Shown: piece by piece, positions 5,179 to 45,280 of the stretch
How positions within the stretch are numbered: the first letter of the stretch is position 1
Layout: every line of letters starts with the position of its first letter
Assembly (NCBI RefSeq): GCF_963921235.1
Contig: NC_086125.1
Coordinates: 7,936,001 to 8,000,000, forward strand
Direction: 5' to 3'
Source of the DNA: Mobula hypostoma
Taxonomy: Eukaryota
Length of the DNA: 64,000 nt
Translations under genes and position numbers: made by a program
Notes under the pieces: model-generated
Told to the model about the DNA's origin: nothing
Database searches by the model: none
What the model saw: the letters and a program-made list of their open reading frames with translations, nothing else

Positions 5179-5332
5179 GAGCATTCCACACTCTGCCAGA
5201 TTCTGCTCTAACTCCACTCATACCAGTGGTTCCCAGCTGGGGGTTCACGGACCCCTCAGTTAATGGTAGGGGTCTATGGCATCAAAAAGTTTGGGAACAC
5301 CTGACTAATAGGTTGCATAGTGGGCTGTATCT

Positions 5333-8200: not shown

Positions 8201-8456
8201 TGTAGCTATGGTGGTTCTTCTAGGAACATCTTGAAATAAATCCCTGTATTTAAAAATTAATTGTTTCATCTGCTCTCTCTGCTCTGGCTGGCAATGAGCT
8301 AATTTTTCATCAATATTTTCCAGAACTTCTGAGTTTGGTAATCCAGCTGAAATAACGTTGGGTTTAAAATGAATTTCAGATGAATCATCCATTAAGTTTT
8401 CAGTGGGATCAAATTCATTATTATTGACCACAACAGTCATAGTAGCATTTTGTTTC

Positions 8457-9440: not shown

Positions 9441-9446
9441 AGTTTT

Positions 9447-9584
9447 CTTCCCTTTTTATACCCATGGTGAACATGTCATCACATGACCTCACATCGGCAG
9501 GAAATTACCTCAGGTGATCTCCAAAAAAAACCCATTACATCATTCTCACAAGAAAGTCACAAGATCTCCTTGAGGGACGTAACA
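9447..9584 (-). repeat. Truncated 5' LTR (first ~138 bp)
   Basis: Near-identical to 6582-6717; fused directly to the integrase coding sequence. Confidence 0.85.
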
Positions 9585-11230: not shown

Positions 11231-11466
11231 TTATGAGTGGTTATTGTTTAGAACTCCGTCTGAATTCACTTCTGTTAAAGGAAAAGATTCCTGATCAATC
11301 CCAGAAGGGGTTTCCTGATTGTTATGGGGTGCTGCATTCTGGACCACATAATGCCCTGTTTTCTGAGCTCTGTTTCTTAGGATGCAGACGATGACCAGCA
11401 CGACTAACAGTATTAGGATGAGTACCAAGATTACCAGCACCACCTTCCAAACATTATCTGGGGAAC
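11231..11466 (-). CDS. Exon 11: transmembrane helix, cytoplasmic tail and stop
   Basis: ttttgtgcag|GT TCC CCA; VVLVILVLILILLVVLVIVCIL then RNRAQKTGHYVVQNA (basic stop-transfer plus a VCAM-like KxGxY..A motif); TAA at 11233-11231. Confidence 0.92.
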
Positions 11467-14400
11467 CTGCACAAAAGCCATTACACAATCATTAACCATC
11501 TCAGGCAAATACATCAATTGTCAAACCACTAATCCTTCTGAGAATCCCGGAATCTTGCAGATTGCATGTACCTTACTGTTTACTCTCCCATGCTTTCTCA
11601 GATTTTCTAAAAAACACATACTACACATGAAACATTTTGACATGGTACTTCACAACCAATGAAAATCATTTCTGAGGAGTAATGACTGTGAAGGCCAAAT
11701 TTCACCCAGCAAGACCAGAAACAAACATGTGGCAACGCCATAATCTGCTTTAATAATGCTGATTGAGGGGCAAGTAGTGACCAGGATTCCATTGGAAACC
11801 ATCTGCTGTTCTTTGCGTTTGTCATTTTGTTTTAGCTACGAGCCTGAGAAAGCAGGCTGTTTAATCCCTCAGCTGGAAGGCAGCACCTCGGAGAGTGCTC
11901 CCTCAGGTTGGAAGCCCGTGATGAGCTGTGTGCCCAGGGTTCAGAGCTAGGCCCATTGCTGTTTGGTCAAGAACATACAGGGACATGTTTAGGAAGTTTG
12001 CAGATGACAAGAAGAATAGGTGGCATTATGGACAGTGAAGATGGTTATTGGGAATTACAGGGAAATCTTGATCAGCTACGTAAGTAGACAGAGGAATAGC
12101 AAATGGAGTTTAATTCAGATACGGAGGCAGGGTAACATTGTGGTTAGCACAGCGCTTTACAGGACCAGCAACCCAGGTTCAGTTCCTGCCGCTGTCTGTA
12201 AGGAGTTTGCATGATCCCACTGTGACCGTGTGTGTTTCCTCTGAGTTCCTCCCACAGTCCAAAGACGTACCAGCTGGTAGGTTAACTGGTCATTGTAAAT
12301 TGTCCTGTGATTAGGCTAGGGTTCAATCAGGGGTTGCTAGGCACCGCGGCTCAAAAGGCCGGAAAGGGCTGCTTCGTGCTGGAACTCAATCAATCAATAA
12401 GTGTGAGGTGTTGCATTTTGGAAAGTGAAGTTAGTGTAGGACTTTTCACAGTGAACGGCAGAGCCTTGCAGTGTGTTGTGGAACAGAGAGATCGAGGGAT
12501 CTCAGTTCCTTAAAGTGGTGTCACAGGCAGACAGTATGGTGACAAAGGCTTTTGGCACACTGACCTTCATCAGTCAGAGTATCGAGGGTGGCGGGTGTAC
12601 AGGATGTCAGTGGGGCCACATTTGGAATAGTTTTCCGTTCTGCTTGTCCTTCCATAGGAAAGATGTTGTCACCTTCACCCACATCTCCTGCATTTCCCGA
12701 ACATCTCCATCATCTCACCACCTTAACAGTGATCAGATCCGCTTGTCCTTACCCACAACGCCATGAGCCTCTGCATCCAACACATCATTCCCCTCAACAT
12801 CCGCCATCTCCAAAACGACCCTACTGCTAAACATATCGTTACCTCCTCACTCTCTCTGCAGAGATCAATCCCTCAGTGATTCCCTTCTCCATTTGTCCCT
12901 CCCCACTAAACTTTCTCCTGGCACATATCCCTGCAAGTGGCCAAAGTGCTACACCTGCCCATTCACATCCCCGCTCACCTCCATTCAGGGCCACAAACAG
13001 TCCTTCCAGGTGAGGCAACACGTCCCCTGTGAATCTGCTGGGTTGTCTATTCTGTCCGGGGCTCCCAATGTGACCTCTCCCACACTGATGAGATCCATCG
13101 TTCATTGGGGGACAGCTTTGTCGAGCACCTCCGCTCCATCTGTCAAGACCTTTTAATTCTGATTCCCATTCCCATTCATGTCCATCCATGGTCTCCATTG
13201 TTCCAAGATGAGGCCGCCCTCAGAGTGAAGGAGCATCACCTGGGTAGCCATTCCTCCTGGGTAGCCTCCAACCTGATGGCATGAATCTCGATTTCTCCTT
13301 CCGGTTCAAAAACATTCACTCCCACTTTCCTCTTTTGCTATTCCCTCCTGAGAGCCATTACCTCTTCTCACTTGCCTATCAGCTCCCCCTGGGTCTCCTC
13401 CTCGTTCCCTTTCTCCTGTGGTCCACCGTCTTCTATCGGATTCCTTCTTCCCCAGTCCTTCATCTTTCCCATCCACTTAGAATCACCTTTCACCATCTCT
13501 ATTATCCCTCCCCTCCACCCACCTTTTTAGTCTGGTTTCTTCCCCTTCCTTTTCAGGCCTGAAGAAGGGTGTCAGCCCGAAACGTAGACTGGTATGAACA
13601 GTGAAGAGGCCATTTACAAAGCAACACTGTTTGAGGCACAGATCTCAAAGCAAAACACTGCAGATGCTGAAAATCTGAAATAAATACACTAGAATGGGAA
13701 TACTTAGAAGTAAACAGGGTTAACCTTCCAGACCTTTCATTTGATCCAACTTGAAGCTCTGTTTCTCTGTTCCAAGATGCTGTTGGACCTGCTGAGTATC
13801 CCAACATTTTCTGTCTTCATTACTCTTAAAGGTAGTTTGCCCATTTCAACACACACAAAATGCAGGAGGAACTCAGCAGGCCAGGCAGAATCTGTGGAAG
13901 AGAGTAAACAGTCGATGTTTTGGACCGAGACCCTTCAATAGGACTCACGAAGGGACCTGATGAAGAGTCTCAGCCTGAAACATCGACTGTGTACTCTGTT
14001 CCACAGATGCTGCCTGGCCTGCTGAGTTCCTCCAGCACTTTGTGTTGTTGCTTTGGGTTTCCAGCATCTACAGACTTTCTCACGTTTGCCCATTTGCTCC
14101 TTTGCTGTTGGTGTGCAGAGGAATAGGGGAAAATAATGAATAACAGGATGTCAATCTCAGGAATCAGACAGAAGCTCAGTTTAACACCCCATCTGACAGC
14201 TGGTATGTCTGAGACTGCTTTCTCAGTACTGCTCAGGACACTAGCCTGGTTTTAATGCCCAAGATACTCAAGAGAGATTGAACCGCCAATCTCCCGACTC
14301 GAGGCAGGAGTACCATCCGACAAGTCACACGCAGTCTGATGTAGAGAGAGATTGTACACCTTTGTTTATCCTGGGCATGTCATAACTCTCAGCATTTACT

Positions 14401-17400
14401 GGTGATCACTCAGGGATGATATCTTGGCTCTGAAAGGGTTATTTATTTTCTCATCAATGCACTGTGACAAAGGTAACTTACTGACCTTCCAGCTTGATTT
14501 CCACTTGCTTCTCATCTGTTCCAAGTTTATTCCTGGCTCTACACTTGTAAATTCCTTGATGTTCTGATGTTGCCTGGGGAATGTGGAGAACCCCAGGAAG
14601 GTCGGTTTCCCCTGCGACTCCCTGACCGGGTCTTTCCCACGTCAGTGTTACCTGGGGGTTTCCACTGGAGTCACAGGTGATTGTAACTTCATCATCTACT
14701 CTGATGAAGACTGAAAACCCGGACACGGTTTTGTTATTTACTGATATAGTTGTGTTTTGTGGTTTATCTGGAAAAGAGTGAAAAGAGTGAAATTAACCAG
14801 CCCCTCCCATAGGACATAGAACAGTACAGCACGGGGTGGGCCCTTTGTCCCATGATGTTGTACCGACCTTTATAAACCTATTCCATCGACAACCCAACCC
14901 CTCCCTCCTGCACAGCCCATCGTCCTCCATTCTTCTTTCATTCACGTGCCTATCTAAGTCTCTTAAATGTCCCTTATATATCCGTCTCAACACCCACCCC
15001 TGACAGTGCAGTCCAGACACTTCCTACTGACTATGTAAAAACTTGCCTCTGACTCCGTGGCTCATCATAAAAGGATGTCCTCTGCTATAGTCATTACCCC
15101 CGGGGAATTACGTGCTGGCTGTCCACTCTTCCTACGTCTCTTACAATCTTACACAATCATCCTCCTTGGCTCCAAAGAGCTCACTCAACCTTTCCACAGA
15201 AGACATGCTCTCTAATCCAGGCAGCGTCCTGGTAAATCTCCCCTGCACCATTTCTAAAGCTTCTTCATTTTTCCTATAATGAGGTGACTGGACTTCACTA
15301 CACTGTGACTCCAAAAGGCTGGAAAATCGAATTTGACTGTGTGCTGAGCTCACTTCAGAGCAGCTGTGGTCAAAGTCCCGAGAGCCTTCAATCCAGAGTT
15401 CACTCTCAGTAAACAAACCATCTCGCTCTGCAATGAGCCCAGAACTCTCGTTGTCGTCAGGCTGAGAAACAACAGATTCTTTCGAGCCGCATGAGCTCCT
15501 TTTAACCAGAAGCATTTTAAGAGAGCCTTGTGCAGGGAGCAGTCCCACTGTCTGCTTCTCTGGTAGGGGGTGGGGGTGTGATTCACCACCAGGCCACAGT
15601 TTTCTCCAGGAAACACCAACCCTCATTCATGCCACAAGGTGAAGTATCTCAGCACTAACTCACTGTGTCCACTGTGGCTCATGGGAGCACCACCAGTCTT
15701 GTTTCAAACCGTTCTGGATTGAAGTTGTACGCCAGAGACTGGAGCACAATATCGAGGCCGGAGTGGTGGTGAACCTGTGGCATGTGTGCCCAGGATGGCA
15801 CAGGAAGAAACTTTGTTGGCATGCAGCAATGCCCCTCGATTCTTCTGATTTTTTCATTTATTTCAATGTCTCTGTTATACTTTTATTAATAGTAACTTAA
15901 TGAATGCACAAATTGTTACTTATGTGTAAATAACAATTACACATTGTAATAGAGTCAGAGAAAAGTACAGCACAGGAATAGGCCCTTCGGCCCATCTAGT
16001 CCATGCCAAAACTTTGTAAACGGCCTTCTCCCATCGACCTGCACCAGGACCATAGCCCTCCATATCCCTACCATCCATGAACTGATCCAAACTTTGCATA
16101 AACATTGAAGTCAAGCTTGTAAACATCACTTGTGCTGGCAGCTTGATCCACACCATCACGTCCCTCTAAGTGAAGAAAGTTCCCCTCATGTTTGCATTAA
16201 ACCTCACCTTTTACGCTAACCCCATGACCTCTGGTTGTAATCACTCCAACTTCAGTGGAAAAAGCCTGCTTGCATTTACCCTATCGACCCTTCATAACTT
16301 TGGATTCCTCCATACAATCTCTTCTCAACCTTCTATCTACAGAGTAATAAAGTCCCAGTCATAAATAAAGGTATTGACTCTAGAAAATAGGACTCATCCT
16401 TTTTCTTTCGTAGAGTTCATAACTATTTTAACTGATTTAGTAATCAATGATATCTATTAACCCCATCATGTCACTGCACTGAAAACACTTTAAGCCATTT
16501 TTGATAATGCTGTTCACATTGTAAATCCATGATTGTATTTAAATATTTATGCATGTTTTATTCCACATTCATGCTTTAAACTTTATCTTTGATATTATTC
16601 TCTTGTAGTGTTGAATGCTGTTGTACTTTGTCACAGTCACTCACTCACCAACACACCAGAGCAAATTCCTAATCCATATTGTGTATATGGTGAATGAAAT
16701 TGATCCCTGATAATCTCGGCACAAAATTACCATGGCACCCAACAGACATTTTTCAGAAGATCATCACCAGTTTAGACAGACGACCCCAAAAGGGTTTGTC
16801 ACCCCTCATTTCGGCTGACTTTACAGTGATGTTCTCAGGAGGTCCCACATTGACACAGTGCCGTCCTTTAACTCAGATATTAAGCTGAAGTTTCATTTTG
16901 TAGAGTTGCCATTCTGAAGAGGAACAGAATTCACCCTTGTGCCCTGGGCATATTTTGCTTCTGTTTTTGATCTGACTGTGTAATGATATTGTACAGACAG
17001 GGAATAAAGCAACTTATTCTGATCTCATGTCTTATGGTCTTATGGTCTATTCCACAAAGAAACCTCCTATACTTACACAAAATCTCTGCACGATGAGAGG
17101 AGTTGGTGGAACCAATATCATTGCGGACTCTGCACATGTACTGACCACTGTCTCCCAGTTGGACTGAGTGGATGTGCAGTGTCTCACCACTACTGATCGT
17201 TTTTCCATCTTTGATCCAGCGCACCTCCGGAACTGGGTTGGCATCTGCGCGACAGGTTAAAATCTGGGATTTCCCTTCAATCCAGTCCTGCTTTCCAGAG
17301 ATCTGTGCTTTCCTTGGAGAATCTGTAAAGTTGGTTAGAAATAGAAATTAAAAGCTGAAAGTTAAGAGCACAGAATCATTTCTTGGTGATTTTTGGTGCT

Positions 17401-20400
17401 GACCAAGTTCCACTTCTCAGAGTAGAGAGACTTTTACTTTAATAGCCTGTGCTACCACCAAGCACAGCAAGTCAAACACACTCGGTGGCCACTTTATTAG
17501 GTATACCTGAAGACCCCAGTTTGGTCTTCTGCTGCTGTAGCCCATCCTCTTCACAGTTCAACATGTTGTGCATTCAGAGATGCTCTTCTGCACACCACTG
17601 TTGTAACACCTGGTTATTTGAGTTCCTGTCACTTTCCTGTCAGCTTGAACCAGTCTGGCACTCTCCTCTGACCTCTCCTGTTAACAAGGTGATTTTGACC
17701 ACTGAAGCACCGCCTACTGGATAGTTTTTGTTTTTTGCACCAATCTCTGCAACTCCTTGTGCATGAAAATCTCTGGAGGTTGGCAGCTTGAGATACTCAA
17801 ACCACCCTGTCTGGCACCAACAATCATTCCATAGTCAATGTCACTTACATGCTAATGTTTGATCTAAATGTGACTAAACCTTTCCTATCCATGGACCTGC
17901 CCAAGTGCCTTTCAGACCATTTTGAGAGGACTCAAATATCAAAGCAAAGAGGTAATGTTAAGGCTTTATGAAGCACTGGTGAGGCCTCACGGAGTATTAT
18001 GAGCAGTTTTAGGCCCCTTATCTGAGAAAGGATGTACTGAAACTGGAGAAGGTACAAAGGAGGTTCACGAAAATGATTCCTGCGTTGAAAGGCTTGTCAG
18101 ATGAGGAGCTTTTGATGGGTCTGAACTCACTGGAATTCAATAAGATGAGGGGAATCTCATTGAAACCCATCGTATGTTGAACGGTCTCGATAGAGTGGAT
18201 TTGGAGAGGAGAGTGGCAGAGTCCAGGGCCAGAGGACACGGCCACAGAATAGAGGGGTGTCCTTTTCGAATGGGGATAAGGAAGAACTTCTTCAGCCAGA
18301 GAGAGGTGAATCTGTTGAATTTGTTGCCACAGACAGTTGTGGAGGCCAAGTCACTGGGTATATTTAAGGCGAAGGTTGATAGATTCTTGATTAGTTGCGG
18401 CGTGAAGGGATAAGGGGAGAAGGCAGGAGATTGAGGCTGAGAGGCAAAATGGATCAGCCATGATGAAATGACGGAGCAGACACAATGGGCCAAATGGCCT
18501 AATTCTGCTCCTATATCTTATGGTTTTTTAATTGTTATCAACATAGTTACTGAGGCTCTGTGATTTATCGACTCTTTTCCGTTTTATGTCTTTCATAATC
18601 TGTGTTTTTGCACGATCTTTCTTTATGCCGTATAAGTGATTTAATTTTGATGTTTGATCATCTTGTTGCCACTGTGCAACTTAAATTTGGCCCGATTTGT
18701 AAGTTTTTCATTGCGAGGGGGGTTGATGTTCTGGCAGTTCAGTGATTTGTTTTTCTGCATGGGGGAGGGAGGATTTGATGCTTGTTGCCGTTGCCATTGA
18801 AATTTGGGGAGATTTGTAAGTTCTGTTCTGTGGCATGAACGGCTTCCATATTTTACTTTGTTTCCTGCCTATCTGGAGAATACGAATCTCAGAGTCATGC
18901 TGCGTACATACTGTGATAATAAATGAACTTTTGAAACTTTTTCATCTGGTAGCTCATTCCATGTAACCTCTTGATGAAAATGTTGCTCCTTGGGTTCCTG
19001 TTGCTTCTCCCCCCTCTCAGCTTAAACCAATGCCTGCAATGGGATAAGCATCACAATCAATACCAGTACAGTATAACAGTTATCCCTAATGGAATTACTT
19101 TGTCATCTACTGAATAATTTGCTGAACTCTGTCAGGGGTTAACAACAGTAAGCTTCATGCCTGTAGTTGGCAGTGGTTCACATTTAGAACAGTGAAAGAT
19201 GTGCATTACAGCTTTAATGCCTGCTGAGCATTGGGAACTTCGTGCTTTTGAGGAGAGCTGAGGAAGTCTGCAGTTCATAGTGATCCCACAAGGTGGCAGT
19301 GCATCATGCATTTTGATATTGAGCTTCGCCTCTTTTAAACCTCCCTACACTGAGCCCATTTATTCCCTGAGATCCTCAAAGGAGAGAAAATGAGCATTGT
19401 TACTTCAATATTGGTAGAAATTGTATAATTCCAATACTCCCACCTTGGATATAGCAACAGAAAGGAAAGGTGAAAAGTTACAGACCAGATTTAATATCAC
19501 CGGTACAGCTCAGTGACGATTTGTTAACCGTAACGGCAGCAGAACAATGAAGCAGATTACCAATAATTATAAAGAAACAAAGCTGATTTACACCAACTAT
19601 ATATATTTATTTATATGTCTACTAAATAGTTAAATTAAAATAAGTAGTATCGAACAAAAAGTAGTGAGGTAGTGTTCATGGGCTCAATGTCATTTAGAAA
19701 TCAGATACCACCTTCTAGAAGTTTTGGGCAGGTATCAGAACCCATCCTGGACTTGGTTCAGGATCTCTTATTCCCTCGAACCTCTCCCCACTCCATGTTC
19801 TCTGGAACATCCAGCATTAGCCAAGCTGAGGTCCCGAGAAGTGCCTGACGAAGAGTTGATCTGAAATGTTAACTTGGACCGACTTGTGTGTTGCTAACGT
19901 TTTGTGTGTTTTGTTTCTGAAGCGTCCCAGTGCACCCGCACCTCTTCATTTGCTCCTTGAAAAGTCCTGTTGAACTGAGTCACAGGGACATAATGGACAG
20001 CCTCTGACTGTATTATCTGGAGTGTATGAGACTGAGAGCTGTTCTTATAAAGGTGTATAAAATCACAACCATTATCTCATGTTCTGGTTATTTATTGCTA
20101 TTTATTTCAATTTGTATTTGCACAGTTCATTGACGTCTGATTGATCCTGTTATGGTTACTATTCTGTGGATTTGCTGAGGATGCCCAGAGGCAAATGATC
20201 TCAGGGTTCTATGTGGTGACATGTATGAACTCTGATAGTAAATTTACTTTGAACTTTCAACACGAGGGCACATGTCCGAGATGAGTGGGAACATGAGACG
20301 AGTTTCTCTAGTTTGTGACAAGTTACAAAACCAGTTGTCACAGAATAGGGGAACTTCGGGTTCAGAAGGGAACGTACAAAGGACAGAGTTATGTTGACCT

Positions 20401-23400
20401 TTGTTATCAGGCTGGCCAGGTGACAGGAAACCTCGAGACGAAATGTTTCAGTGAGTTACAGTATCGCAACGTGGAAAGTTGACCAGGTACGCTCCATCCA
20501 CAAAGAGCAGAACAAAGCCAACACAATCATTTGGTGTTTGCTCCCTGACGTGGGAATACTGTATATTCCAGTTGTTCACCGGTTACTGAGTTACCAAAAG
20601 CTTTGCACAATTACCTTCACCAGACCGACGCCATTAGTTCACGAGAGAAACTTAGCAGCGCCATAAGGGAAATCAGAAACAGGTAACAGATGTTGGCCAT
20701 GTCAGTGTTGCCTGATTCCAAAGAAACGAATCGGCAAAACAAAAAATACAAGATTTTGATTGGGAAGGGTGAGGGGGGAGGGGGGTAGGTCAGGAAATGG
20801 AGTCGTTGGAGGTGGGGGTCACAGAGGGGTCGCAGGAGGTTGGGGGCAAAGAGCGGTCACGGGAGGGTCGGTCAGACAGGGGTCATGGGAAGGGGGTCAG
20901 AGAAGGCACGGGGAGTCAAAGAGGGGGCACTGAATGAACTCAGGCCTCACGCCGCGGGGTCACTTGCTTTTCCGCCGCTGGGGGTGAGGTGTCTGAGCCG
21001 TCATGAGCAGCACAGCGCTGTTGTGGTTGACTGAAGATTCCATTTGAACTGAGGGGTCTGGACTATATGCATATACATTTGTCTGCTTGTGTCTTTATTT
21101 TTTTTTGATATATTCCTCTATTTGTGAGGACTGGACCTCTACGCCACATATCGCCGTGCGGCCGTTGGGCATCAGGGCCAGTCGAAAGATGATCACAGTG
21201 ACTGGGGGTCTGGACTATACATGTGCATAATCTGTGTCGTTGCAATTTACTGATGTTCTGTATGGGTTTGTTGATCTGTACATGTAGGAACTGGGCATCA
21301 AACAGCGGTGATTCCGGGTGGGGGGGGGAGTGTGGGAGGCAAACCTGGACTCTTTCATTCGGTGAATGTGTTCTTGCGTGTGACTGCCGGTAATGTGTTT
21401 TAGCACCTTGGCCCCATTAGTAACGCTCTCTCGTTTGGCTGTACTCATCTGTGGTTGAATGACAATTAAACTTGAACTCAATTGAAGATGATTTGACTTG
21501 GTTCGGGTTTAGACAGAGCAAATAGTGATCAGGTGACCCTGTCAGTGGATAGTTGGAAGTCCCTCAAGTCAGAGTCCCAGGCAACCGTGGGGAGTTGAGC
21601 AGAACTCGTTCATGTGGAGTGTGTTTGTGAGGTGGAACTCTCTTCCTGAAGGCTGAGGGAGCAGAATCAATCAGGCTGAAGGATTGGCTCGAGGGAAAGT
21701 AGGTTGGAAGGCTAATGGGGGCTAAATGGATTAATTTGAAAAGAGCAGGGAGGGTCTTGATGGGCTGAATGGCCTCTGTTGTAATGATTCTAGGATATAA
21801 TTTTTATTTTATTTAGAGATATATTACGGTTACAAGCCATTCGGCATCTACAAGCCTGCACCACCCAATTACTCACATGTGACTACATATCTATGTCTAT
21901 GAAGGTGACTCTTTGGCAGCCGCTGCCTGTTCAATACTTGTTCCACTACACTCGCCAGGGTGGTTCCATTCATTGTATGAGCCCCACCCTCAAATGGATC
22001 GGGATTGAACACCATTGTCCAGCCCTCGGCCCACTCTCTTAGATAACCAGGATGACCCTGTAAGTTACTGATAACTCTTTACTGCCTACAATATCACTGG
22101 TACCATCTGCAAACTCACGCCTTCTCACACAAATATAAGTAATGAACAACAAAGATGCCATTGGCAGTCTCTGCGGGATACCATTAACCACAGGCCTTCA
22201 GCGAAGAAACAGGTTTCCACCATTTCCCTCTGCTTCCGACTGGCAAACCATTTGTGAATCCAGTTAACCATCTCTGCCCTGTCCCTCCTGACCACCATCC
22301 TCATGGTCTCCTCTTTGGAAAAACTCTAACCAATTTTTCAGTCAGGGTTTGCCACATACAGAGCCATGCTGATTCTCCCAAATCATAACTTGTCCATCCA
22401 AACCCCAGATTCCTATCCCGACACTGATGTCGGATGTGTTCCCTTATTATTTGTCATATTAACCCAGATTGGATGAATTGCTTTAATATTTCCTTCTAAT
22501 TAACCCTCAGCTAATTTAACATGGGACATGATGGTTAGCACAACACTTTACAGTACAGGCCAACGGGGTTTAATTCCTGCAACTGCCTGTAAGGATTCTG
22601 TACATTCTCCCTGTCACCGTGTGGGTCCCCTCCGGGTGCCCTGGTTTCCTCCCACAGTCCAAAGACATATCGGTTGGGAGGTTAATTGTTCATTATAAAG
22701 TGTCCCATGATCATGCTAGGGTTAAATCAGGGTATTACTGGGCAGTGAGGCTTAAAGGGCCAGAATGGCCTATTCTGTGCTGTATCTCAATAAATAAAAA
22801 TAAATATAACACAGTACAAAATAAAAATAAGATAACTCAGTACAGCCCTTCAGTCCATCTTGTGCACACTGACCATGATACCATTCTAACTGCCTGCACA
22901 TGGCCTGTGTCCCTCTATTCCCTGCCAGTCTAAATATTATTAAAAGTTAAATCATACCTGCTTCTGCGAGCACGTTCCAGGAAGCTACCACTCTCTATGC
23001 AACAAAAAATGACCTTGCACATCTTAAAGTCTTCACTCTGTCATTCACCCTTTCTCCCATCCCGCAAACGGTCAGGTCCGCATTGGGACCTTGCTGTGTG
23101 TGGACTGAGAATACTGCTCACCATTGTACAACAGGACACTAATGTACAATGGCCCCATGTGTCTCCACAGTACTGATGCATCAAAATAGGAGAAATGATT
23201 GATCCAGTTAAACACTCTCAAAGCAACACACACACAATGCTGGAGGGACTCAGCAGGTCAGGCAGCATCTATGGAAATGACATTTCAGGCCGAGACCCTT
23301 CTTCAGCACTGGAAAGGAAGGGGGAAGACTGCAGGACACTCCCGTAGTTTGAAGAGTTCTGTATGGAGTGGGAGGAGAGCTGGTTGTTCGTTCATCTGCA

Positions 23401-35400: not shown

Positions 35401-38400
35401 ATTTTAGTTCCACATCCCATTCCCATTCTGACATGTCTATCCACGGCCTCCTCTACTGTAAAGATGAAGCCACACTCAGGTTGGAGGAACAACACCTTAT
35501 ATTCCGTCTGGGTAGCCTCCAACCAGATGGCATGAACATCGACTTCTCTAACTTCCTCTAATGCCCCAACCCCCCCGCCATACCCCATCTGTTACTTATT
35601 TTTATACACACATTCTTTCTCTCACTCTCCTTTTTCTCCCTCTGTCCCTCTGAATATACCTCTTGCCCATCCTCTGGGTCACCCCCCCCCTTGTCTTTCT
35701 TCCCGGACCTCCTGTCCCATGATCCTCTCGTATCCCCTTTTGCCTATCACCTGTCTAGCTCTCGGCTCTATCCCTCCCCCTCCTGTCTTCTCCTATCATT
35801 TTGGATCTCCCCCTCCCCCTCCCACTTTCAAATCTCTTACTCACTCTTCCTTCAGTTAGTCCTGACGAAGGGTCTCGGCCTGAAATGTCGACTGCACCTC
35901 TTCCTGGAGAAGCTGCCTGGCCTGCTGCGTTCACCAGCAACTTTTATGTGTGTGTTGAATGATGAAAGGCCTCGATAGAGTGGATTTGGGGAGGAAAGTG
36001 GCAGAGTTTAGGGCTAGAATGGAGAGATGAGGAAGTGAGGGGGGTTGGGAGTTGATGTTCTCACAAATCACAGATTTGTTTTACCACCTGGGATTGGCGT
36101 GGGGAGGTTTAAATGCTCGTTACCGTTGCCATTTAAACTGGGGTGATTTGTCAGCTTTCTGTGTTGGGGGCGTGGTTTGAAGAGCTTCCATATTTTTCAT
36201 TGTTTCCTGGCTATCTGGAGAAGACGAATCTCAGAGTTATATACTTCATAATAAATGAACCTTTGCATCTTGATTTGCATTGAATCGAATTAACTTTATT
36301 CCTTACATCCTTCATATATATGAGGAGTAACAATCTTTATGTTATGTCTCTGTCTGAACGTGCAATGTGCAGTTTATAGTAATTTATAATAAATAGTGTG
36401 TACAACAGGATAGTCAATATAAGATAGAAATACAGTTGTGTCAGCATAAGTTAAGCAGTCTGATGGCCTGGTGGAAGAAGCTGTGTTAGGGTGATGACGT
36501 CTCTGTAGGCTGCCTCATTATCATTATTTGAGATTAAGCCAAGCAGTGTAGTGTCATCAGAAAATTTAATTAGCAGTTTGGAGCTGTGGGTGGTGACACA
36601 GTCATGGGTATACAGAGAGTAAAGGAGAGTAAAAATCTTTTTCGTCTGGTAGCTCATTCCATTTAGCCTCTAGATGAAAAGGTGCCTCTCAGGTTCCTGT
36701 TGCATCTTCCCCCTCTCAGCTTAAACCAATGCCTGGGAGAAGCATCACAATCGATACCAGTACAGTCTAACAGTGGCTGTGTTATCCCTAATATTGTCAT
36801 CTACTGAGTCATTTGCTAAGGGTTAACAGCAGTAAGCTTCATGCCTGTAGTTGGCACTGATTCACATTTAGAACAGAGAAAGATGTGCATTACAGCTTTA
36901 ATGCCTGCTGAGCATTGGTAACATCCTGCTTTTGAGGAGAGCTGAGGAAGTCTGCAGTTCATAGTGATCCCACAAGGTGGCAGTGCATCATGCATTTTGA
37001 TATTGAGCTTTGCCTCTTTTAAACCTCCCTACACTGAGCCCATTCATTCACTGAGATCCTCAAAGGAGAGAAAATGAGCATTGTTACTTCAATATTGGTG
37101 GAAATTGTATAATTCCAATACTCCCACCTTGGAAATAGCAACAGAAAGGAAAGGTGACAAGTTACAGATCAGAATCAGAATCAGATTTAATATCACAGGT
37201 ATAGCTCAAAAACGATTTGTTAACTTTACGGAAGCAGAACAACGAAACAGATTACCAATAAATATATAGAAGGAAAGCTGAATTACACCAAATATATATA
37301 TATGTCTATTAAATAGTTAAATTAAAGTTAGTAGTGCAGAATAAAAAGTAGTGAAAGTGTTCAGGTTCAATGTCATTTAGAAATCAGGTACCACCTTCTA
37401 GAAGTTTTGGGTAGATAGCAGAACCCATCTTGGACTGGATTCAGGATCTCTTATTTCCCCAAACCTCTCCCTACTCCATGCTCTCTGGAACACCCGGCAT
37501 TAGCCAACCTGAGGTCCCCAAAAGTGCCTGACGAAGAGTCAAAAGCCTGAGTAAAACTCAACAGCCTTTAGTGTTGATAACAAGATCACTTACACTGGAC
37601 ATCGAGAGTGGCTGACTGTCGTTTAACAATGGTGTTGGAGCGATGGTGAAGTGTCAGCTCGGCCTCACAGGTGAACTGCTGTCCATTCAGCTCTGCTCGT
37701 GGATTCACAGTGTGGTAGATAGTCAGCCCAGTACTGGCTGACCTGCTCACTGATATCTCACTTCCCTTCTTCAGTCTGAGTTGAAGTTCCCCTGAGATGT
37801 TAAACACACTGCAGGTAATATTCACTGGAATTCCCTCAGTGGTGATCGGGATTTGGATTTCAGGGTTGGAGAAAACTGTAACAACAGAGAACATTGTCAG
37901 AAACTTTCTCTGAGTGAGTTCTGCAGCCCTTCTGTACCACTAGACTGAGGTAGTCAACCTTAAGCACAAATGATTTACTAGCATGCATTATTCATTAATT
38001 TGAGGAAAAGCATAACAAGATGTATTTAAATGCGTAATTCCCATGTTTCAAGTTTTTATGGCATTTATCTGTCCCACCGTCTGCTCATTAATACGCGATC
38101 TTACCCACAGAGGCAAAAACCCCTGACCCCTGCACTAGACTGAGGTAGCAAATGGAACTCTTTTGAAGTCTGTCTGTGGTACAGCACCCACCTCCCTCAC
38201 TGTGTGTCTAGTGGCTAAAGAAGGTGCTGCAGGAATTATCAAAATCCCCCCCCCCCCCGCCACAGTTCCCAGCATCATTCACTGCTGACCCAATCTCATC
38301 AAAGCAAACGACACATTGGTTCAGTGCATCCGACAGAGTGGAACTTTGCAGCACACACACACACATATACACACACGTAAACACACACATATACACACAG

Positions 38401-41400
38401 ATTTATTTACAACATCTTTGAGTCTGAGCAATCCTGGTAAACGTATCATTCACCATCACAACAGGGTTGACTTAGCTAGTAACCAGCCAGTGGTTTCTCA
38501 GTCATTTCAGATGGCACTTTGCCTTCGAAGCAATGGTAAATAATCCACAGAATTAATTTCTTGGGTATGAAACACACACAGACACAGACACACACACACA
38601 CACACAATATCTAATTGCAACTTATAGATTATTTTATGTATTGCGCTGTACTGCTGCCACAAATCAACAAAATTCACAGCGCATATCAGTAATGATAAAC
38701 TGATTCTGATTTAACTTTGCTGCAAACTTCTGTCTCCTTTCTATCTAATGATACGTTTGCTGGCAGCCTTAGATTCCACATTCAGTTTCTATCTCTGACA
38801 AATTCAATTGCCGGTCGCTGCTTCTGCAACACAATCTTATCCTGGTACACAGATTTCCGAATGGATGTACACTACCTCAGTATTTGATTTTTTGCTCTCT
38901 TTTTGCAATACCATGCAGATATATATATCTTATTGTAATTTATAATTTGTTCTCGTTCTTCTACATGACACTGTACCGCTGCTGCAAAACAATACATTTC
39001 ATGACATGTGCCAATGGTGTTGAACCAGATTCTGATTAATGTCCAGGCTTAGTCTCATGCTCCATGGAACCTGCTCCATTGATAAACCCATGGCTAAATA
39101 ACTACATCTGATTCAAAGATTCAAAGGTTCATTTTATTGTCAATGTTTGTATGCAGAATACATCTCTCACATTCGTCTTCTCCAGATAGCCATGACATTC
39201 AGAAAAACTGTGGGAGTTGTTGAAAGAAAGGATGTTGACCACCTCCCATCCACCCCTCCCCACATGAAAAGGAAATCTGCTCCGTGTTGCTGCCAGTAGA
39301 CTGTTTAGGAGCAGGTGGGAAACTCTGAAAGATTACTGTCTAGTCAAAGTGCTCAATTATCCAGCATGCTTACCGTACACATTAATGGCAATGCTATCAT
39401 TCTTTGATGAAACTGATGGATAGTCCTCAAAATCTGCCATGCATTTCAGTTCAGTCACACCGGTCTCTCGTGGTGTCCATGTAGCTGTTGCCTGGAGTGT
39501 GGTGGGATTTGATCTACTGGCAACTGAATTCCATTCCTCACCATCCTGAAACCACCTTAATCTCACCTTCTCAGCAGGGTAGATGTTTGAGACCTCACAC
39601 GTCAATGTGGTCTCCTGATTTACTTCTACAGAGTCTCTGTTGAGGATCCTTGGAGGCTCTGGAAAAGCTGCAATACACACAAGAAATTCACTGCACATTG
39701 GTTTGCCTTGGCCTGTTTCAGATACGGATGGAATGATGCAAAACTGACCAAACCCCTATAAGCCTCTGTACACAACCAGGAGTTCATCAAACCCACGTCG
39801 GTATCAGCAGGTTGCATACTATGCTCTTCCTCTGACTCTTCCTGCTCTTCAGGCATCCCAAAAATCTAACTCTTTGCTCCTCCCGTGGGCAGTGATACAG
39901 GAGTAAACTCTCACTGACTTATCAAGAGTGTGGTCTCAGTGAGCAGCTAGTTTGGGGTGGCACGGTAGTGTAGTGGTTAGCACAACGCTTTACAGTGCAG
40001 GTGATCCATGTTCAATTCCCGATGCTGCCTGTAAGGAGTTTGTACATTTTCCTGTGACCGTGTGGATTTCCTCCGACAGTCCAAAGACGTACTGGTTGGT
40101 GGGTGAACTGGTCATTGTAAAATATAGTGTGATTAGGCTCGGGTTAAAATGGTGGATTGGTGGGCAGCGTGACTCGAAGGGCTGGGAGGGCATATTCTGC
40201 ATTGCAGTCTTTCAATCTATTTTGTTCTGCCCGTACTGGCCCAAGAGAAGGGCTGATCCCTAAAGAATGGTCATAAAGAAAACTTTAGGCACATTTGCCT
40301 TCATAAATCCAAGTACTGAGTACAGGAGATGGAACATTATGTTGAAGTTTTATTAGGCATTGGTGAAGCCTAATTTGGAGTACTTTATACTTTATACTTT
40401 ATTGTCACCAAACAATTGATACTAGAATGTACAATCATCACAGCGATATTTGATTCTGCACTTCCCGCTCCCTGGATTACAAAGATTAAATATTTAAAAT
40501 ATTTAAAATAGTAAAAATTAGTAAATATTAAACATTTAAATTATAAATCATAAATAGAAAATAGGAAAATGGAAAGTAAGGTAGTGCAAAAAATCCGAGA
40601 GGCAGGTATTGTGTGTAGTTCTGGTCACCTACCTATTGGAAAGATGTAAATGAGGTTGAAAAAGTACAGATAAAATTTACAAGGATTTTGCAAACAACAG
40701 GAATTCTGCAGATGCTGGAAATTCAAGCAACACACACAAAAGTTGCTGGTGAACACAGCAGGCCAGGCAGGACCTGACGAAGGGTCTTGGCCTGAAACGT
40801 CGGCTGCACCTCTTCCTAGAGATGCTGCCTGGCCTGCTGCGTTCACCAGCAACTTTTTATGTGTGTTACAAGGATTTTGCCCTGGATTGCAGGACCTGAG
40901 TTATGTGGGAAGATTGAATAGGTTAGGACTTTATTCCTTGGAAAGCCGTAGACTAAGAGGAGATTTCATAGAGTTACACAAAATTATGAGGGGCAAGCTT
41001 TTCCCACAGAGGTTGGGTGGGACTGCAACTGGAGGTCATGGGTTAAGGGTGAAAGGTGAAAAGTTCATTGGGAAAACGAGAGGAAACTTCTTCGTTCAAA
41101 TGGCTGTGAGAATGTGGAATGAGCTGCCAGTGCAAGTGGTGCATGTGAGCTCGATTTGAACATTTAAGAGAAGTTAGGATAGGTACATGGATGGTAGGAG
41201 TATGGAGGGCTGTGGTGCTGATGCAGATTGATGGGAGCAGGTAGATTAAATGGTTCAGCACAAACTAGGTGGGCTGTACTTTTCTATGACTCTGTCTATT
41301 ACCACCACCTGCACTGACCACCAAGAGGGACATGGGAGTATCAGGTAAGTGTGCAGAATTTGCAGGAGTTTGGAATTGTTTCAGTGACCTTCAGCCAAAT

Positions 41401-44400
41401 AATCTCTTCTACTTCCATGATTCTCTGAAGTTGTAAACTTTCAGTCTTGGTTGAAGATAAACAAGTTTTGCTGAACGGATAAAACAAGAACTAAATGTGA
41501 AAACTTTCAAAACAGGACCGCTCATTGCTTATTCTTGCCAATCTTTAACCAATGTGGGGAGAGGTTAAGGGGCAGTTCGATTTCAAAATGGAACTCACAG
41601 TAAGTTTGCAGAGTCACAGATGCATTTGCGATTTGTTTGGTCCTGTTCGGGTCCAAGTTCAACTCTGCCAAGCAGGTGTACACCAGTCCATCGTCTGAAA
41701 TACTTGGAGTGAAATGAAGGACGTTCTTCAGTGGACCATCATCTGGGTAACCTGGTTTCTCTGTGGAAATATTTGCTACAGTCTCACTCCCTCTGAGCCA
41801 GGTGAGTACGAGTTTGTTCCTTGGATAGACCTTCAGGCCAGTACACTCCAGCTGATATGGTTTGTTAACTTCCAGCACGTCAGGAGGTGTAACAATGCTT
41901 AAGTTTCGATCTGTCAAAGGAGAATCATGATTGACAATGGAGATTGGAAAATTCCAAATCAAAAATTACCCTGACCAATGTGCTTGTGGATCATCCCAGC
42001 CTGTGACATTCCCAGATTCTGTGTAACACTTTCAAGTTATACTTAATTTTATATTGCTGCCTTTCATCCTGTTATACTCTGCTATTGGATGTATTTAGAA
42101 CAAAAGTTTTCACTTACTGTATATGGGGACCACCCGTTTGTCCTCCTTCACTGAATTTTGACATTTTACAGTACAGGGCACTGTGAAATCCCATTTCTGG
42201 ACACTCGGAAATCGGTCTGTAATCCATTTATCACCCTTAGTTCTGTTGGGATTTATCCCTGGTTTATATTCCAGAGTTATCGATGGATTGTTACACGTTG
42301 TACTGCAGTTCACCTCCAGGGAGTGTCCAAATTCCGCCACTAGGGAGTTTGTTTTGACCGAAACCTCAAATCCATTCAGTTTATCTGCCAGAGACACACA
42401 GGGAAATGGAATCTGTTCAGTGAAGTGTTGTGTGCAGTTCAATGGATAGACTTACCATTCAGACAGTAAGGGGACGGTTCACCAGACTGATTCCCGGGAT
42501 GGCAGGACTGGCACATGAAGAGAGATTGAGTCAACTATGCCCATGTACATTGAGGTTTGGAAAATTAGAGAAAATTGAATCAAACTTATGACGTTTTGAC
42601 AGATCTCAAGAGGTTGGATGCAGGATATACGTTTTCCCCAGCTGATGAGTGTAAACAAGGGATTGCAGTCTCAGGATGGAGAGATCGAGCTCTGGAGAAA
42701 AATCTTCACACACATGTAGTGAAGACCAAATCACTAAATGTATTTAAATAGGAAGACAGACTTTGAGGCACCAGTGGCATTTATATAGAGAACGCGGGCA
42801 TCTCTTGTGTGCAACAGTTTGAATGAACTTCATTGCAGTCTGTTCCACACAAAATAAATGTTTGGTTCAATGGTTCCATTTAAAATCAGACAATGTATAT
42901 AGTATACAACCTGAAATTCTTGCTCTTCGCAGACGTCCACGAAACAGAAGGGAAAAAAACTCAAAGAATGAATGACAGAAAATGTTTTAACCCTAAAGCG
43001 CCCCCTCCTCCCATGAACAAGCAGCAAAAACTTCAGTCTCTCCATCCCTCTGACCCCACTTGATGCAGCAAACATCAACCACGCCCCTCCTCCTACCACC
43101 CCGCCCCCCCCCATGCAAGCAAAAGTAAAGCCCCCAGAGCCCAAGATCTAGAGTTCATCAGGCAGGATAATTTCATCAGCATAATTTTAGCCCTTGCAAT
43201 TCAATCTGATGGAATATTTTCAGTCAAAGACCTTAAAGACTACTAAAAAGGGTGGATCTGATGTCAAACAGTATTACTGACCCCTGAATTCTGCAAAAGT
43301 TTTGCCTGGAGATAATTAAGCTCCATCTTTCCAAGCATTATTCAGTAGAAATTACCCGATTCAGATTTAATATCAACATCATATGTTGTGAGATTTGTTA
43401 ACTTTGCGGCAGCAGCACAATGAAATACATGATAAATATAGAAAACAACTATATTACAGTAAAGATATGTGGATATTAAATAGTTAAATTAAAATAAGTG
43501 CTAAATCAGAGATACTGAGGTAGTGTTCATGGGTCAATGTCCATTTAGGAATTGGATGGCGGAGAGGAAGAAGCTATTCCTGAATCGCTGAGTGTGTGCC
43601 TTCAGGCTCCTGTACTTCCTTTCTGATGGTAACAATGAGAAGAGGGCATGTCCTGGGTGATTTGTCGGCTTAATGCTGGACGCTGCCTTTCTGAAGCACC
43701 AGTCCTTGAAGATGTCTTGGATACTACGGAGCCTACTACCCCCGATGGAGCTGACTAACTTTACAATATAAAGTAATGATAAATTTCTGTCAGTTTTTAT
43801 AAAGTGAAGCCAAAAACTGAGATAGGAAGCCACATCTTATAGAACACACTCGTGCTGGAAAGTTTGTGAACCCTGTAGAATTTTCTGTATTTCTGCATGA
43901 ATATGACCTAAAATATGATCAGATCTTCATGCAAATCATAAAACTAGATAATTAGAACCCAATTAAATAAGTAACATCAAAAATATTATACTTATTGGGA
44001 AAAATGACCCAATATTACATGTATTTGCTGGGAAAAGTATGTGAATCTCTGGAGTAATGCCTTCTACAAAAGTTATTTAGAGTCAGGTGCTGCAATCAAT
44101 GAGATGAGATCGGAGGTGTGGGTTGTAGAGGTGTGCTGCCCTATAAAACAGACACACAAAGTCAGGTTACTGACAGAGCCTGCTCTTCTCATGAAAGATC
44201 TGTTATGTGCACCATGCCTCAGTCGAAACAACTTTCAGAGGACCTCAAAAGAAGAATTGTAGAGATGCATGAAGCTCGAAAAGGCTGCAAAAGCATTTCT
44301 AAAGACCTACGTGTTCATCAGTCGACAGTAAGAGAAATCGTCTACAAATGCAGGAAACTGTTGCTACTGTCCCTGGGAATGGGCGTCCTGCAAAGATCAC

Positions 44401-45280
44401 ACCAAGAGCTTGAAGTGCAGGGCTGAAGGAGATGAAAAAGAACCCGAGAGTAACAGCAAAAGATCTGCAGAAATCTCTAGAACTCACTAAAGTCTCTGTA
44501 CATGTGTCCACTATAAGAAAAACAAGAATGGTGTTCCTAGAAAAACACCACGGAGGAAATTACTGTTCTCCAAAGAAAAAAAGTCATTGCTGCATGTCTG
44601 AAGTTTGCAAAAGACCACCTGCATGTTTTACAGCACTTCTGGGGCAATGTTCTGTGGACAGATGAGACAAAAGTTGAGCTTTTTGGCAGAAACTGTTCGG
44701 AGGAGAAATGGCACGGCACACCAACACCAAACTCTGATCCGAAATGTGAAACATGGTGAAAGGATCGTCATGGTTTGGGGCTGCTTTGCTGCATCAGTGC
44801 CTGGACAGTTTGCAATCGTTGAGGGAACGATGAATTCAAAATTGTGCCAGGACATTTTACAGGAGAATGTCAGGGTAGCAGTCCGTCACCTGAAGCTTAA
44901 TAGAAGTTGGATAACACAGAGAACAGGAAGGAGCCCAACGAAGCGTGGCGTCTGCGACCTGCTAAGCTTTCGCCCAGCGTAAAACAGAGAACGTGAAAAA
45001 AGGAACGAGTAACCGTGAAACGGTCTGAAACGCTCCCGGCAAGTTATGCAGAATAAAGGGACACTTTCATCAAATGTGGCCGGTTGAAGATCCGTTCACG
45101 AGACGCACTCTAACCGCCTCGCAGAAACATACAGTTGTAAACATTCAGCTTCTCATTCTGCGAGCTCAAACAGATGAATGAACAGTTATTACGTTTAAAG
45201 GTATTTGACCTACCTGTTATGAGGGAAAGTGCTGTGAGAAATAAAACATAACCGCCCGCGGAAATCGGCGTGTAATCCAT
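11231..45280 (-). CDS. ICAM/VCAM-family cell adhesion protein, 9 Ig domains, 947 aa (11-exon model built by hand)
   Basis: Exons 45214-45280, 42118-42384, 41599-41910, 39374-39667, 37594-37875, 33443-33724, 26237-26530, 23452-23733, 17077-17322, 14486-14767, 11231-11466; all GT-AG and phase 1; total 2844 nt in one open frame. Confidence 0.88.
12128..12400 (+). mobile_element. V-SINE-like SINE
   Basis: tRNA-like head (gtggttagcacagcgctttacagg..ggttcagttcc) followed by the cccacagtccaaagac domain. Confidence 0.75.
12830..13600 (+). mobile_element. Penelope-like element 3' fragment (GIY-YIG remnant plus pLTR)
   Basis: PGTYPCK..KCYTCPFTS..QSFQVRQH..CES followed by ggggacagctttgtcgagcacctccgctcc (LGDRFxEHLRS-like); ends in the pLTR motif. 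Confidence 0.82.
13554..13591 (+). ncRNA. Minimal type I hammerhead ribozyme motif (Penelope pLTR)
   Basis: CAGGC CTGAAGA A GGG-TGTCAG-CCC GAAACGTA GACTG: core, stem II, ACGU mini stem III, GUA site, stem I 4/5 paired. Confidence 0.65.
13850..14045. repeat. Penelope pLTR inverted repeat containing two opposed degenerate hammerhead motifs
   Basis: Arm gaggaactcagcaggccaggcagaatctgtggaa..cagtcgatgttt is the reverse complement of aaacatcgactg..ttccacagatgctgcctggcctgctgagttcctc. Confidence 0.85.
14486..14767 (-). CDS. Exon 10: Ig domain 9
   Basis: cttttccag|ATAAACC; YKPQNTTISV..ITCDSSGNPQVTLTW..GIYKCRARNKLG; donor AAG|GTCAGT. Confidence 0.92.
17077..17322 (-). CDS. Exon 9: Ig domain 8
   Basis: aactttacag|ATTCTCC; YSPRKAQISG..LTCRADANPVPEVRWIKDG..DSGQYMCRVRNDIG; donor TTGT|GTAAGT; 246 nt. 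Confidence 0.92.
17930..18525 (+). mobile_element. CR1-type LINE 3' end
   Basis: LVRPH.EY, EKVQRRFTKMIP, NFFSQREVNLLNLLP, LGIFKAKVDRFL; typical 3' UTR. Confidence 0.85.
22520..22810 (+). mobile_element. V-SINE-like SINE
   Basis: tRNA-like head, V-domain (gggtgccctggtttcctcccacagtccaaagac) and aataaataaa tail. Confidence 0.75.
23452..23733 (-). CDS. Exon 8: Ig domain 7 (paralogue of domain 4)
   Basis: gttacag|TTTTCTCC; VNITCSVFN..QQFTCEAEL; donor CAGT|GTAAGT. Confidence 0.92.
24097..24788. mobile_element. Solo LTR inserted in a CA-rich microsatellite
   Basis: TGTAGT..CTTACA termini; absent at the paralogous site ~38350-38400. Confidence 0.8.
26237..26530 (-). CDS. Exon 7: Ig domain 6 (paralogue of domain 3)
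   Basis: gtattgtag|CTTTTCC; LSCEVSNIYPAEKVRLRWFQDG..ELNCVADF; donor TATG|GTAAGT. Confidence 0.92.
27033..33202 (+). mobile_element. Full-length but decayed L1-clade LINE (ORF1 ~27170-28028, ORF2 ~28695-32856)
   Basis: ORF1 ERHSRRQN..LLYPARLR; endonuclease GGDFN, SRIDYF, SDHAPL; RT GKAPGPDG, QTGFIKNR, GTRQGCPLS, LYADD; C-terminal CDRC..H.FWSC; A-rich tail; 12-bp TSD. Confidence 0.95.
30886..31289 (+). mobile_element. 5'-truncated L1 3' end nested in ORF2 of the host L1
   Basis: Encodes DDSSFKFEQTWRSFIQYFHLM*, resembling the host ORF2 end; aataaaaagatttaa tail; TSD aaaaagagtg. Confidence 0.85.
33443..33724 (-). CDS. Exon 6: Ig domain 5 (paralogue of domain 9)
   Basis: Same splice sites as 14486-14767; only 2 nt differences seen. 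Confidence 0.9.
35027..35293 (-). mobile_element. Short LTR related to the 49.5-52.3 kb LTR family
   Basis: tgtcacattggggtgctgggaacggacccaaatgcaagacacagac is the reverse complement of the LTR 3' end at ~52270-52328; ends CATGACA. Confidence 0.75.
35296..35958 (+). mobile_element. Penelope-like element 3' fragment with GIY-YIG C-terminus and pLTR
   Basis: CSRCGLLYIGETRRRLGDRFAEHLRSV..LRLEEQHLIFRLGSLQPDGMNIDFSNF. Confidence 0.92.
35857..35894 (+). ncRNA. Minimal type I hammerhead ribozyme motif (best stem I)
   Basis: TAGTC CTGACGA A GGG-TCTCGG-CCT GAAATGTC GACTG; stem I AGTC/GACT; GUC cleavage triplet. Confidence 0.7.
37594..37875 (-). CDS. Exon 5: Ig domain 4
   Basis: gttacag|TTTTCTCC; VFSNPEIQIP..CSVFNISG..FTCEAEL; donor CAGT|GTAAGT. 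Confidence 0.92.
39374..39667 (-). CDS. Exon 4: Ig domain 3
   Basis: gtattgcag|CTTTTCC giving YSFPEPP; LTCEVSNIYP..LKCMADF; donor TACG|GTAAGC. Confidence 0.92.
39954..40215 (+). mobile_element. V-SINE-like SINE with pol III A and B boxes
   Basis: ggggtggcacggtagtgtagtggttagc (A box), gttcaattcc (B box, 40010), cagtccaaagacgtac. Confidence 0.8.
40700..40870. repeat. Penelope pLTR inverted repeat enclosing a hammerhead core (40770-40806)
   Basis: Arms aagttgctggtgaacacagcaggccaggcag / ctgcctggcctgctgcgttcaccagcaactt; loop holds CTGACGAAGGGTCTTGGCCTGAAACGTC. Confidence 0.85.
41599..41910 (-). CDS. Exon 3: Ig domain 2 (ICAM/VCAM D2 type)
   Basis: cctttgacag|ATCG; YQLECTGLKVYPRNKLVLTWLRG..DDGLVYTCLAELNL; donor TACT|GTGAGT. 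Confidence 0.93.
42118..42384 (-). CDS. Exon 2: Ig domain 1 (ICAM/VCAM D1 type, 4 Cys)
   Basis: gtctctggcag|ATAAAC; FEVSV..EVNCSTTCNNP..LEYK..PCTVKC; donor TACA|GTAAGT. Confidence 0.93.
43847..44919 (+). mobile_element. Tc1/mariner transposon, left TIR plus truncated transposase (intron 1)
   Basis: cactcgtgctggaaagtttgtgaacc; ATG 44214 MPQSKQLSEDLKRRIV..; WTDETKVE; VKHG..MVWGCF; truncated before the DND motif. Confidence 0.9.

Follow-up and report, generated by a model that had tools for sequence, protein, structure and literature searches.

A nine-Ig gene of the ICAM branch in the lesser devil ray, probably lengthened by tandem duplication of an exon block

The closest described counterparts of the gene reported here are the ICAMs and VCAM-1, integrin ligands of the immunoglobulin superfamily (IgSF). 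Among them, mammalian ICAM-5 has nine immunoglobulin (Ig) domains, the same count as the ray gene, and VCAM-1 is known for an internal duplication of an exon block and for alternatively spliced Ig exons (PMC2119261). The alphaL-type integrins first appear in cartilaginous fish (PMC8359198) and the origin of ICAM1 has been placed only in bony fish (PMC7916592); the literature that we searched held no dedicated paper on ICAM-type genes of cartilaginous fish. We analysed a stretch of 64,000 nucleotides (nt) from the lesser devil ray Mobula hypostoma (contig NC_086125.1, positions 7,936,001 to 8,000,000), called here the window, in which the minus-strand region from 45280 to 11231 is one intact protein-coding gene. 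The best explanation as a whole, to which we give a probability of about 0.62, is that this is a nine-Ig gene of the ICAM branch that arose by tandem duplication of a block of exons. It is an automatically annotated member of a known family and no new kind of system.

A scripted search for exon borders joined 11 minus-strand exons between 45280 and 11231, with AG acceptors, GT donors and every junction in phase 1 (Table 1). Spliced together they make 2844 nt and encode 947 amino acids (aa) with no internal stops, and this product is 100% identical to the M. hypostoma RefSeq protein XP_062891894.1 (P0047), named “vascular cell adhesion protein 1-like”; the span recorded for that gene, 34,050 bp, is 45280-11231 exactly, and the window contains no N letters. 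An earlier note, made by reading this DNA, had proposed that 11 GT-AG exons, a 67-nt signal exon among them, join into one 947-aa frame with nine Ig domains, and the spliced product and the cysteine pair in each Ig exon bear this out. The same note had called the gene hidden, which it is not, because the identical model was already public; that an exon-by-exon reading of raw sequence matched the RefSeq model exactly is to the credit of the method. The signal peptide of exon 1 recurs unchanged in paralogue P0058, and exon 11 is homologous to the transmembrane segment and tail of a Pristis pectinata protein (XP_051897856.1, P0046). Comparison with this Pristis protein also settled the borders of exons 6 and 10, for which a 909-aa model with nearer acceptors (33667 and 14710) was ruled out. 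Specifically, the Dy domain starts 19 residues earlier, with YKPQNTTISVNNKTVSGFSVF, and the true acceptor, TTTTCCAG followed by ATAAACC, lies 57 nt further upstream and is found in both copies.

The sequence predicts a type I membrane glycoprotein in which nine Ig domains come after a signal peptide and are followed by one transmembrane helix and a tail of 47 residues. One cysteine pair is present in every Ig exon, with four cysteines in D1 (C49, C53, C93 and C97). The protein also has 18 N-glycosylation sequons, and its only hydrophobic span, at about residues 876-900, precedes the residues RNR. When Pfam was run exon by exon, Dx′ and both Dy domains passed I-set and D2, D4 and D4′ gave only sub-threshold Ig matches; the membrane-proximal domains are generic I-set domains. 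The TAA stop occupies a codon that is Gln in paralogues P0052, P0053 and P0057. Because the 16 codons past it (region 11183-11233, minus strand) still read TNIHDVTPINSAQIKQ before the next stop, colinear with the tails of these three paralogues, one nonsense change has shortened the tail, which ends 17 residues early relative to six-Ig relatives. Elsewhere, reading through the exon 6 donor (33435-33445, minus strand) gives VEGQ and then a stop, that is, a stop after two codons; a transcript that retains intron 6 or is polyadenylated within it could give a soluble five-Ig protein.

The family assignment is carried by the membrane-distal domains. D1 passes the Pfam family ICAM_N (PF03921) at 31.4 bits, above the cut-off of 21 (E 1.5e-7; positions 4-86 of the 91-position profile), and carries CSTTC...CTVKC, the four-cysteine pattern Cx3C...Cx3C of the ICAMs; these four cysteines are invariant in all 41 family members compared. 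Glu61, within the motif LEYKPG, is kept in at least 90% of the same 41 and aligns in a profile search with the Glu of GLETS in ICAM-5. In the AlphaFold model of D1D2 it directly follows strand 37-40, and the end of strand C in D1 is where ICAMs have their integrin-binding Glu. Used as single sequences against the PDB, D1 matched ICAM-2 (3.5e-5, 31 aligned residues around EVNCSTTCN) and D2 matched VCAM-1 D2 (6e-4) and ICAM-2 D2 (0.07). A D1D2 family profile built from 41 segments ranked ICAM-2 at 8.8e-22, ICAM-5 at 3.7e-13, VCAM-1 at 1.4e-9, ICAM-1 at 1e-7 and ICAM-3 D1 at 4e-6. The fold searches give a similar picture. With the AlphaFold2 model of D1D2 (pLDDT 90.8), the best 15 Foldseek matches in the PDB are all ICAM or VCAM-1 (ICAM-5, VCAM-1, ICAM-1, ICAM-2) and the best 26 in Swiss-Prot are all ICAM1-5 or VCAM1, with CADM4 and MAdCAM-1 ranking below; among the scores, ICAM-5 reaches 8e-15, ICAM-2 a TM-score of 0.67 and ICAM-1 about 1e-11, with VCAM-1 interleaved. 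The Pfam score, the D1D2 profile and the fold searches thus agree with the earlier description of D1 and D2 as ICAM/VCAM-type. An identity as MAdCAM-1 was rejected: the D1D2 profile matched no MAdCAM-1 chain at E up to 1, MAdCAM-1 stands in the Swiss-Prot fold search behind all the ICAM and VCAM1 matches listed, and the mucin-like region that is a MAdCAM-1 trait was not seen in the sequence.

The next two domains point the same way. D3 passes Pfam ICAM1_3_5_D2 (PF21146) with 41.1 bits and E 2.4e-10 against a cut-off of 27.5 bits, and D3′ passes it with 37.7 bits. The D3D4 profile is colinear with residues 190-306 of ICAM-1 (6e-8) and residues 197-314 of ICAM-5, and the best match of the D3D4 model (pLDDT 88) is the D3-D5 fragment of ICAM-1, with a TM-score of 0.71. 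Because the sequences and the modelled structures of D1D2 and D3D4 agree, the gene is assigned on their strength to the ICAM branch of the ICAM/VCAM group of IgSF integrin ligands. It shares with mammalian ICAM-2, ICAM-1 and ICAM-5 an ICAM_N-type D1 with Cx3C...Cx3C and the aligned Glu, the folds and colinearity of D1D2 and D3D4, type I topology and a short tail; it differs from them in that identity is only 20-27% and the membrane-proximal domains of the ray protein are generic I-set. Judged from these sequences, the ray gene is placed at the level of the family, and orthology to any single mammalian ICAM is not claimed.

The nine Ig domains are not nine distinct ones: domains 6, 7 and 9 repeat domains 3, 4 and 5 with 90-99% identity. 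Self-BLAST of the window finds two collinear units, 39838-33202 and 26700-14248, and in addition a match of 13940-14263 to 26711-27032. Between the units the intron blocks are 84-90% identical and the blocks around exons 94.5-99.6% identical. In a four-way alignment, the sequence 5′ of exon 7 shows homology to intron 10 first and then, from about 26700, homology to intron 3; the segment 26700-26719 is a classic tandem-duplication junction, a clean fusion of intron 10 to intron 3. The units differ in content, as tblastn found no counterpart of Dx in 33725-37593 of the upstream unit and the downstream unit lacks the insertion of intron 6 (27033-33201), whose long plus-strand open reading frames (ORFs; 28855-32706) look by eye like a LINE reverse transcriptase. 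Across the duplicated exons there are 22 differences, with a synonymous divergence (dS) of 0.031 and a nonsynonymous divergence (dN) of 0.025. Because the surroundings of the exons are far more alike than the introns, we read this pattern as probable gene conversion around the exons.

These observations suggest the following history. An ancestral six-Ig form, D1-D2-D3-D4-Dx-Dy, would have been the starting point, and a block of about 13 kb reaching from intron 3 to intron 10 and holding D3-D4-Dx-Dy would have been duplicated in tandem, with the reading frame kept because every Ig exon is symmetric and in phase 1. The upstream copy would later have lost Dx and gained the insertion of about 6.2 kb with its LINE-like ORFs, to leave the order D1-D2-D3-D4-Dy-D3′-D4′-Dx′-Dy′. 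The collinear self-BLAST blocks and the clean junction uphold the earlier note’s view that the extra domains came from a local duplication. Its further view, that the count of nine is convergent with ICAM-5 and not a sign of orthology, also stands: the count is the product of a lineage-specific tandem duplication, and shark and ray homologues share the six-Ig form. An ICAM-5 (telencephalin) orthologue was accordingly rejected as an identity, since the nine domains were not inherited as nine. The gene is a clean and datable example of how an IgSF adhesion receptor can grow through tandem duplication of symmetric exons, and one gene displays the breakpoint together with the subsequent loss of an exon, a retrotransposon insertion and tracts suggestive of gene conversion.

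An exhaustive HMMER search with D1 returned 35 representatives. Sharks and rays supply all of the nearest ones (from Mobula, Hemitrygon, Pristis, Narcine, Scyliorhinus, Heptranchias and other genera), and weaker matches occur in turtles, lizards, coelacanth and some teleosts. When 92 family proteins were split into the six module types of the M. hypostoma gene, the widespread form proved to be D1-D2-D3-D4-Dx-Dy followed by the transmembrane segment, with variants that lack Dx; this six-Ig form is shared by Pristis, Hemitrygon, Narcine, Mobula birostris and several sharks. The six-Ig relatives (the Pristis protein, M. birostris P0052 and P0056, and Hemitrygon P0053) have the same modules in the same order and a homologous transmembrane segment and tail, and differ from the M. 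hypostoma gene in that the latter has an extra D3-D4-Dy block after D2. Other models repeat blocks of their own: D1-D2 three or four times in Scyliorhinus (P0001, P0037), D3-D4 three times in Hemitrygon (P0038, P0051) and D1-D4 twice in M. birostris P0050. Either the family shows rampant duplication of exon blocks or the annotation pipeline fuses tandem genes. One M. birostris protein (P0049; 874 aa, locus of 35,164 bp) has nearly the same signal peptide and D1 as the M. hypostoma gene. Single-domain trees hint weakly at a duplication older than the split from M. birostris, with D3 and D4 of the upstream copy tending to group with this protein's first unit; the tree of concatenated D3 and D4 is a polytomy, and a grouping of both M. 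hypostoma units is not rejected (p-AU 0.14).

A sizeable and variably built ICAM-type family is thereby documented in cartilaginous fish. We suggest, tentatively and with doubts that outweigh our confidence, that the ICAM-like genes of sharks and rays form a fast-evolving tandem cluster in which whole blocks of symmetric phase-1 Ig exons are gained by duplication, dropped or swapped, so that closely related species come to have ligands that differ in length and module order. If this is true and the models are transcribed as predicted, the ectodomain length of an integrin ligand would vary at a rapid pace, and pathogens or leukocyte traffic may supply the pressure; a candidate for the ancestral ICAM would then be the six-Ig form, and the family would date to the origin of the alphaL-type integrins.

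RNA evidence comes from related species. Reads of two runs, X7 and X10, were mapped over 8900-14899; the runs hold spliced RNA that is about 95% identical to the window, an identity that assigns it to an orthologue or paralogue in another species. One RNA contig of 1992 nt follows 10559-11431 and then jumps to 14484-14767, with a depth of zero over the unique part of intron 10, and the 21 letters that bridge the jump encode DVWKMVL, a sequence shared with M. birostris P0049 and P0056. A homologue, not the M. hypostoma gene, is therefore expressed in a related species with its junction between Dy and the transmembrane exon at the predicted borders. The contigs from these runs also cover 9595-11431, which argues for a long 3′ untranslated region (UTR) in the homologue. 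Separately, three patches of intron 10 (12100-12499, 12900-13299 and 13700-14099) reach depths in the thousands and are highly expressed repeats.

For the M. hypostoma gene itself, we lean towards a single mRNA that would carry all nine Ig exons, as its exon sequences predict. The rival account is that the 947-aa frame is only one possible reading and that the duplicated cassettes are alternatively used or skipped in vivo, the main products being a five-Ig form (exons 1-6 and 11) or a six-Ig form (exons 1-3 and 7-11), perhaps with a soluble five-Ig protein. These alternatives, too, would keep the reading frame, since phase 1 is common to every Ig exon and any combination of exons stays open. 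Isoforms with and without Dx occur in related species, as do five-Ig forms with D1-D2-D3-D4-Dy and the transmembrane segment, read-through at the exon 6 donor ends after two codons (EGQ, then a stop) and would yield a secreted form, and no RNA spanning the join of exon 6 to exon 7 was found. Against this, RefSeq gives a single nine-Ig model with no isoforms, the exon 7 acceptor (TTGTAG) and the exon 6 donor are as good as those of their duplicates, and both copies keep open frames and splice sites despite an intron difference of 10-16%, so we hold skipping as the principal mode to be unlikely, though to be taken seriously. The same preservation bears on the suspicion that the duplication is an assembly artefact, from a collapsed or duplicated haplotype, or that one copy is a decaying block of pseudo-exons. 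Exons 6 and 10 do differ by only 2 nt, and some tracts are 97-99.6% identical. However, identity between the intron blocks of the two units reaches only 84-90%, one unit has the 6.2-kb insertion and the other has exon 9, and the junction is a clean intron-10/intron-3 fusion, so that a haplotype copy does not fit; with no stops, frameshifts or lost splice sites in the seven duplicated exons, either form of this explanation is scarcely credible.

A different challenge is that the gene is the ray VCAM-1, whose product would bind alpha4 integrins, where an ICAM-type ligand would bind beta2 integrins. In its favour are the RefSeq name, the best single-sequence PDB match of D2 (VCAM-1 D2, 6e-4), the place of VCAM-1 among the top fold matches and the I-set type of the membrane-proximal domains; the VCAM-1 tail also has a similar K-G-S-Y motif. 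VCAM-1 is moreover alike in being an IgSF integrin ligand lengthened by internal duplication of an exon block, and in its D2. Yet D1 passes ICAM_N, the D1D2 profile places ICAM-2 (8.8e-22) twelve orders of magnitude ahead of VCAM-1 (1.4e-9), and the acidic residue that comes straight after strand C is a Glu (LEYKPG), not the Asp of an IDSP loop; D1 differs from its VCAM-1 counterpart in acidic motif and in Pfam family. VCAM-1 duplicated its integrin-binding D1 and has two D1-type domains (D1 and D4), whereas the ray gene has one and duplicated stalk domains only. As for the name, the same pipeline calls paralogues in M. hypostoma ICAM1-, ICAM2-, ICAM4-, ICAM5-, VCAM1- or hemicentin-like, and names given so inconsistently across the cluster carry little weight; “VCAM1-like” is an artefact of automatic naming. 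A ray VCAM-1 is in our judgement improbable. Several points nevertheless weigh against a nine-Ig gene of the ICAM branch. The RefSeq label reads VCAM1-like and not ICAM, and integrin binding is proposed entirely by analogy. Between the duplicates dN/dS is about 0.8 on 22 differences, and constraint on both copies is not demonstrated. When the D2 exon, and then the final exon together with its UTR, served as queries for sequencing runs, only small runs of related organisms were listed and no M. hypostoma RNA among them; the join of exon 6 to exon 7 (33443 to 26530) therefore has the automatic RefSeq model as its only backing. The Dy-D3′ junction peptide (P0047, residues 447-556) had no short match in a set of 5.8 billion proteins, a blank that is uninformative. 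Lastly, M. birostris P0049 is modelled with eight Ig domains in a different order (D1-D2-D3-D4-D2-D3-D4-Dy and the transmembrane segment), which leaves a choice between unstable models and a locus that is still changing.

With the gene read as a nine-Ig member of the ICAM branch, a function can be proposed. By analogy with ICAM-1, -2, -3 and -5, Glu61 of the membrane-distal D1 would engage the metal site of an I-domain leukocyte integrin of the LFA-1 type. The three extra domains would only lengthen the stalk and move D1 further from the membrane.

Table 1. Exons and duplicated units of the gene, in window coordinates
Feature	Position	Strand	Details
Exon 1, ATG and signal peptide MDYTPISAGGYVLFLTALSLIT	45214..45280	-	67 nt, GT donor
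Exon 2, Ig D1 (ICAM_N type)	42118..42384	-	Cys49/53/93/97; Glu61 within LEYKPG
Exon 3, Ig D2	41599..41910	-	PDB matches VCAM-1 D2 and ICAM-2 D2
Exon 4, Ig D3, upstream duplicate	39374..39667	-	Pfam ICAM1_3_5_D2
Exon 5, Ig D4, upstream duplicate	37594..37875	-	D3D4 model compared with ICAM-1 D3-D5
Exon 6, I-set Ig Dy, upstream duplicate	33443..33724	-	Donor at 33443; a G variant 7 nt ahead of it distinguishes this exon
Exon 7, Ig D3′, downstream duplicate	26237..26530	-	89.7% aa identity to exon 4
Exon 8, Ig D4′, downstream duplicate	23452..23733	-	94.6% aa identity to exon 5
Exon 9, I-set Ig Dx′, downstream duplicate only	17077..17322	-	Pfam I-set 2.4e-14
Exon 10, I-set Ig Dy′	14486..14767	-	Differs from exon 6 by 2 nt
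Exon 11, stalk, transmembrane helix (about residues 876-900), 47-aa tail and TAA	11231..11466	-	
Upstream unit, D3-D4-Dy	26711..39838	-	Dx lost, 6.2-kb insertion; self-BLAST
Downstream unit, D3′-D4′-Dx′-Dy′ and part of intron 10	13940..26700	-	Self-BLAST
Duplication junction	26700..26719	-	Intron-10-like (compare 13940-14263) meets intron-3-like (compare 39700-39838)
Insertion of about 6.2 kb in intron 6	27033..33201	+	Absent from downstream unit

Inspection of the 64-kb window revealed no recognisable neighbouring host gene; the flanks hold transposon-like ORFs only. About 1.8 kb downstream of the stop codon, at 6915-9440 on the minus strand, lie ORFs that resemble by eye the reverse transcriptase/RNase H and integrase of an LTR retrotransposon, and self-BLAST marks two tandem-repeat arrays, at 4592-5181 and 47962-48537, whose offsets advance by about 87 bp and by about 75 bp. 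On the other side of the gene, 61825-61929 (minus strand) is a relic of a D1-type exon, PSVQTNRTALTDRITDQILNVQQWGFTLSCCVF, that matches the second half of D1 at about 40% identity and has stops just upstream. Probably this is a dead fragment left by another gene of the family; no further family exons were found between 45.3 and 64 kb. Finally, positions 1-1146 of the window recur at 62856-64000 with 98.5% identity, 62,855 bp later. The match is truncated at either end of the window and suggests a large and recent tandem segmental duplication that would contain the whole gene.

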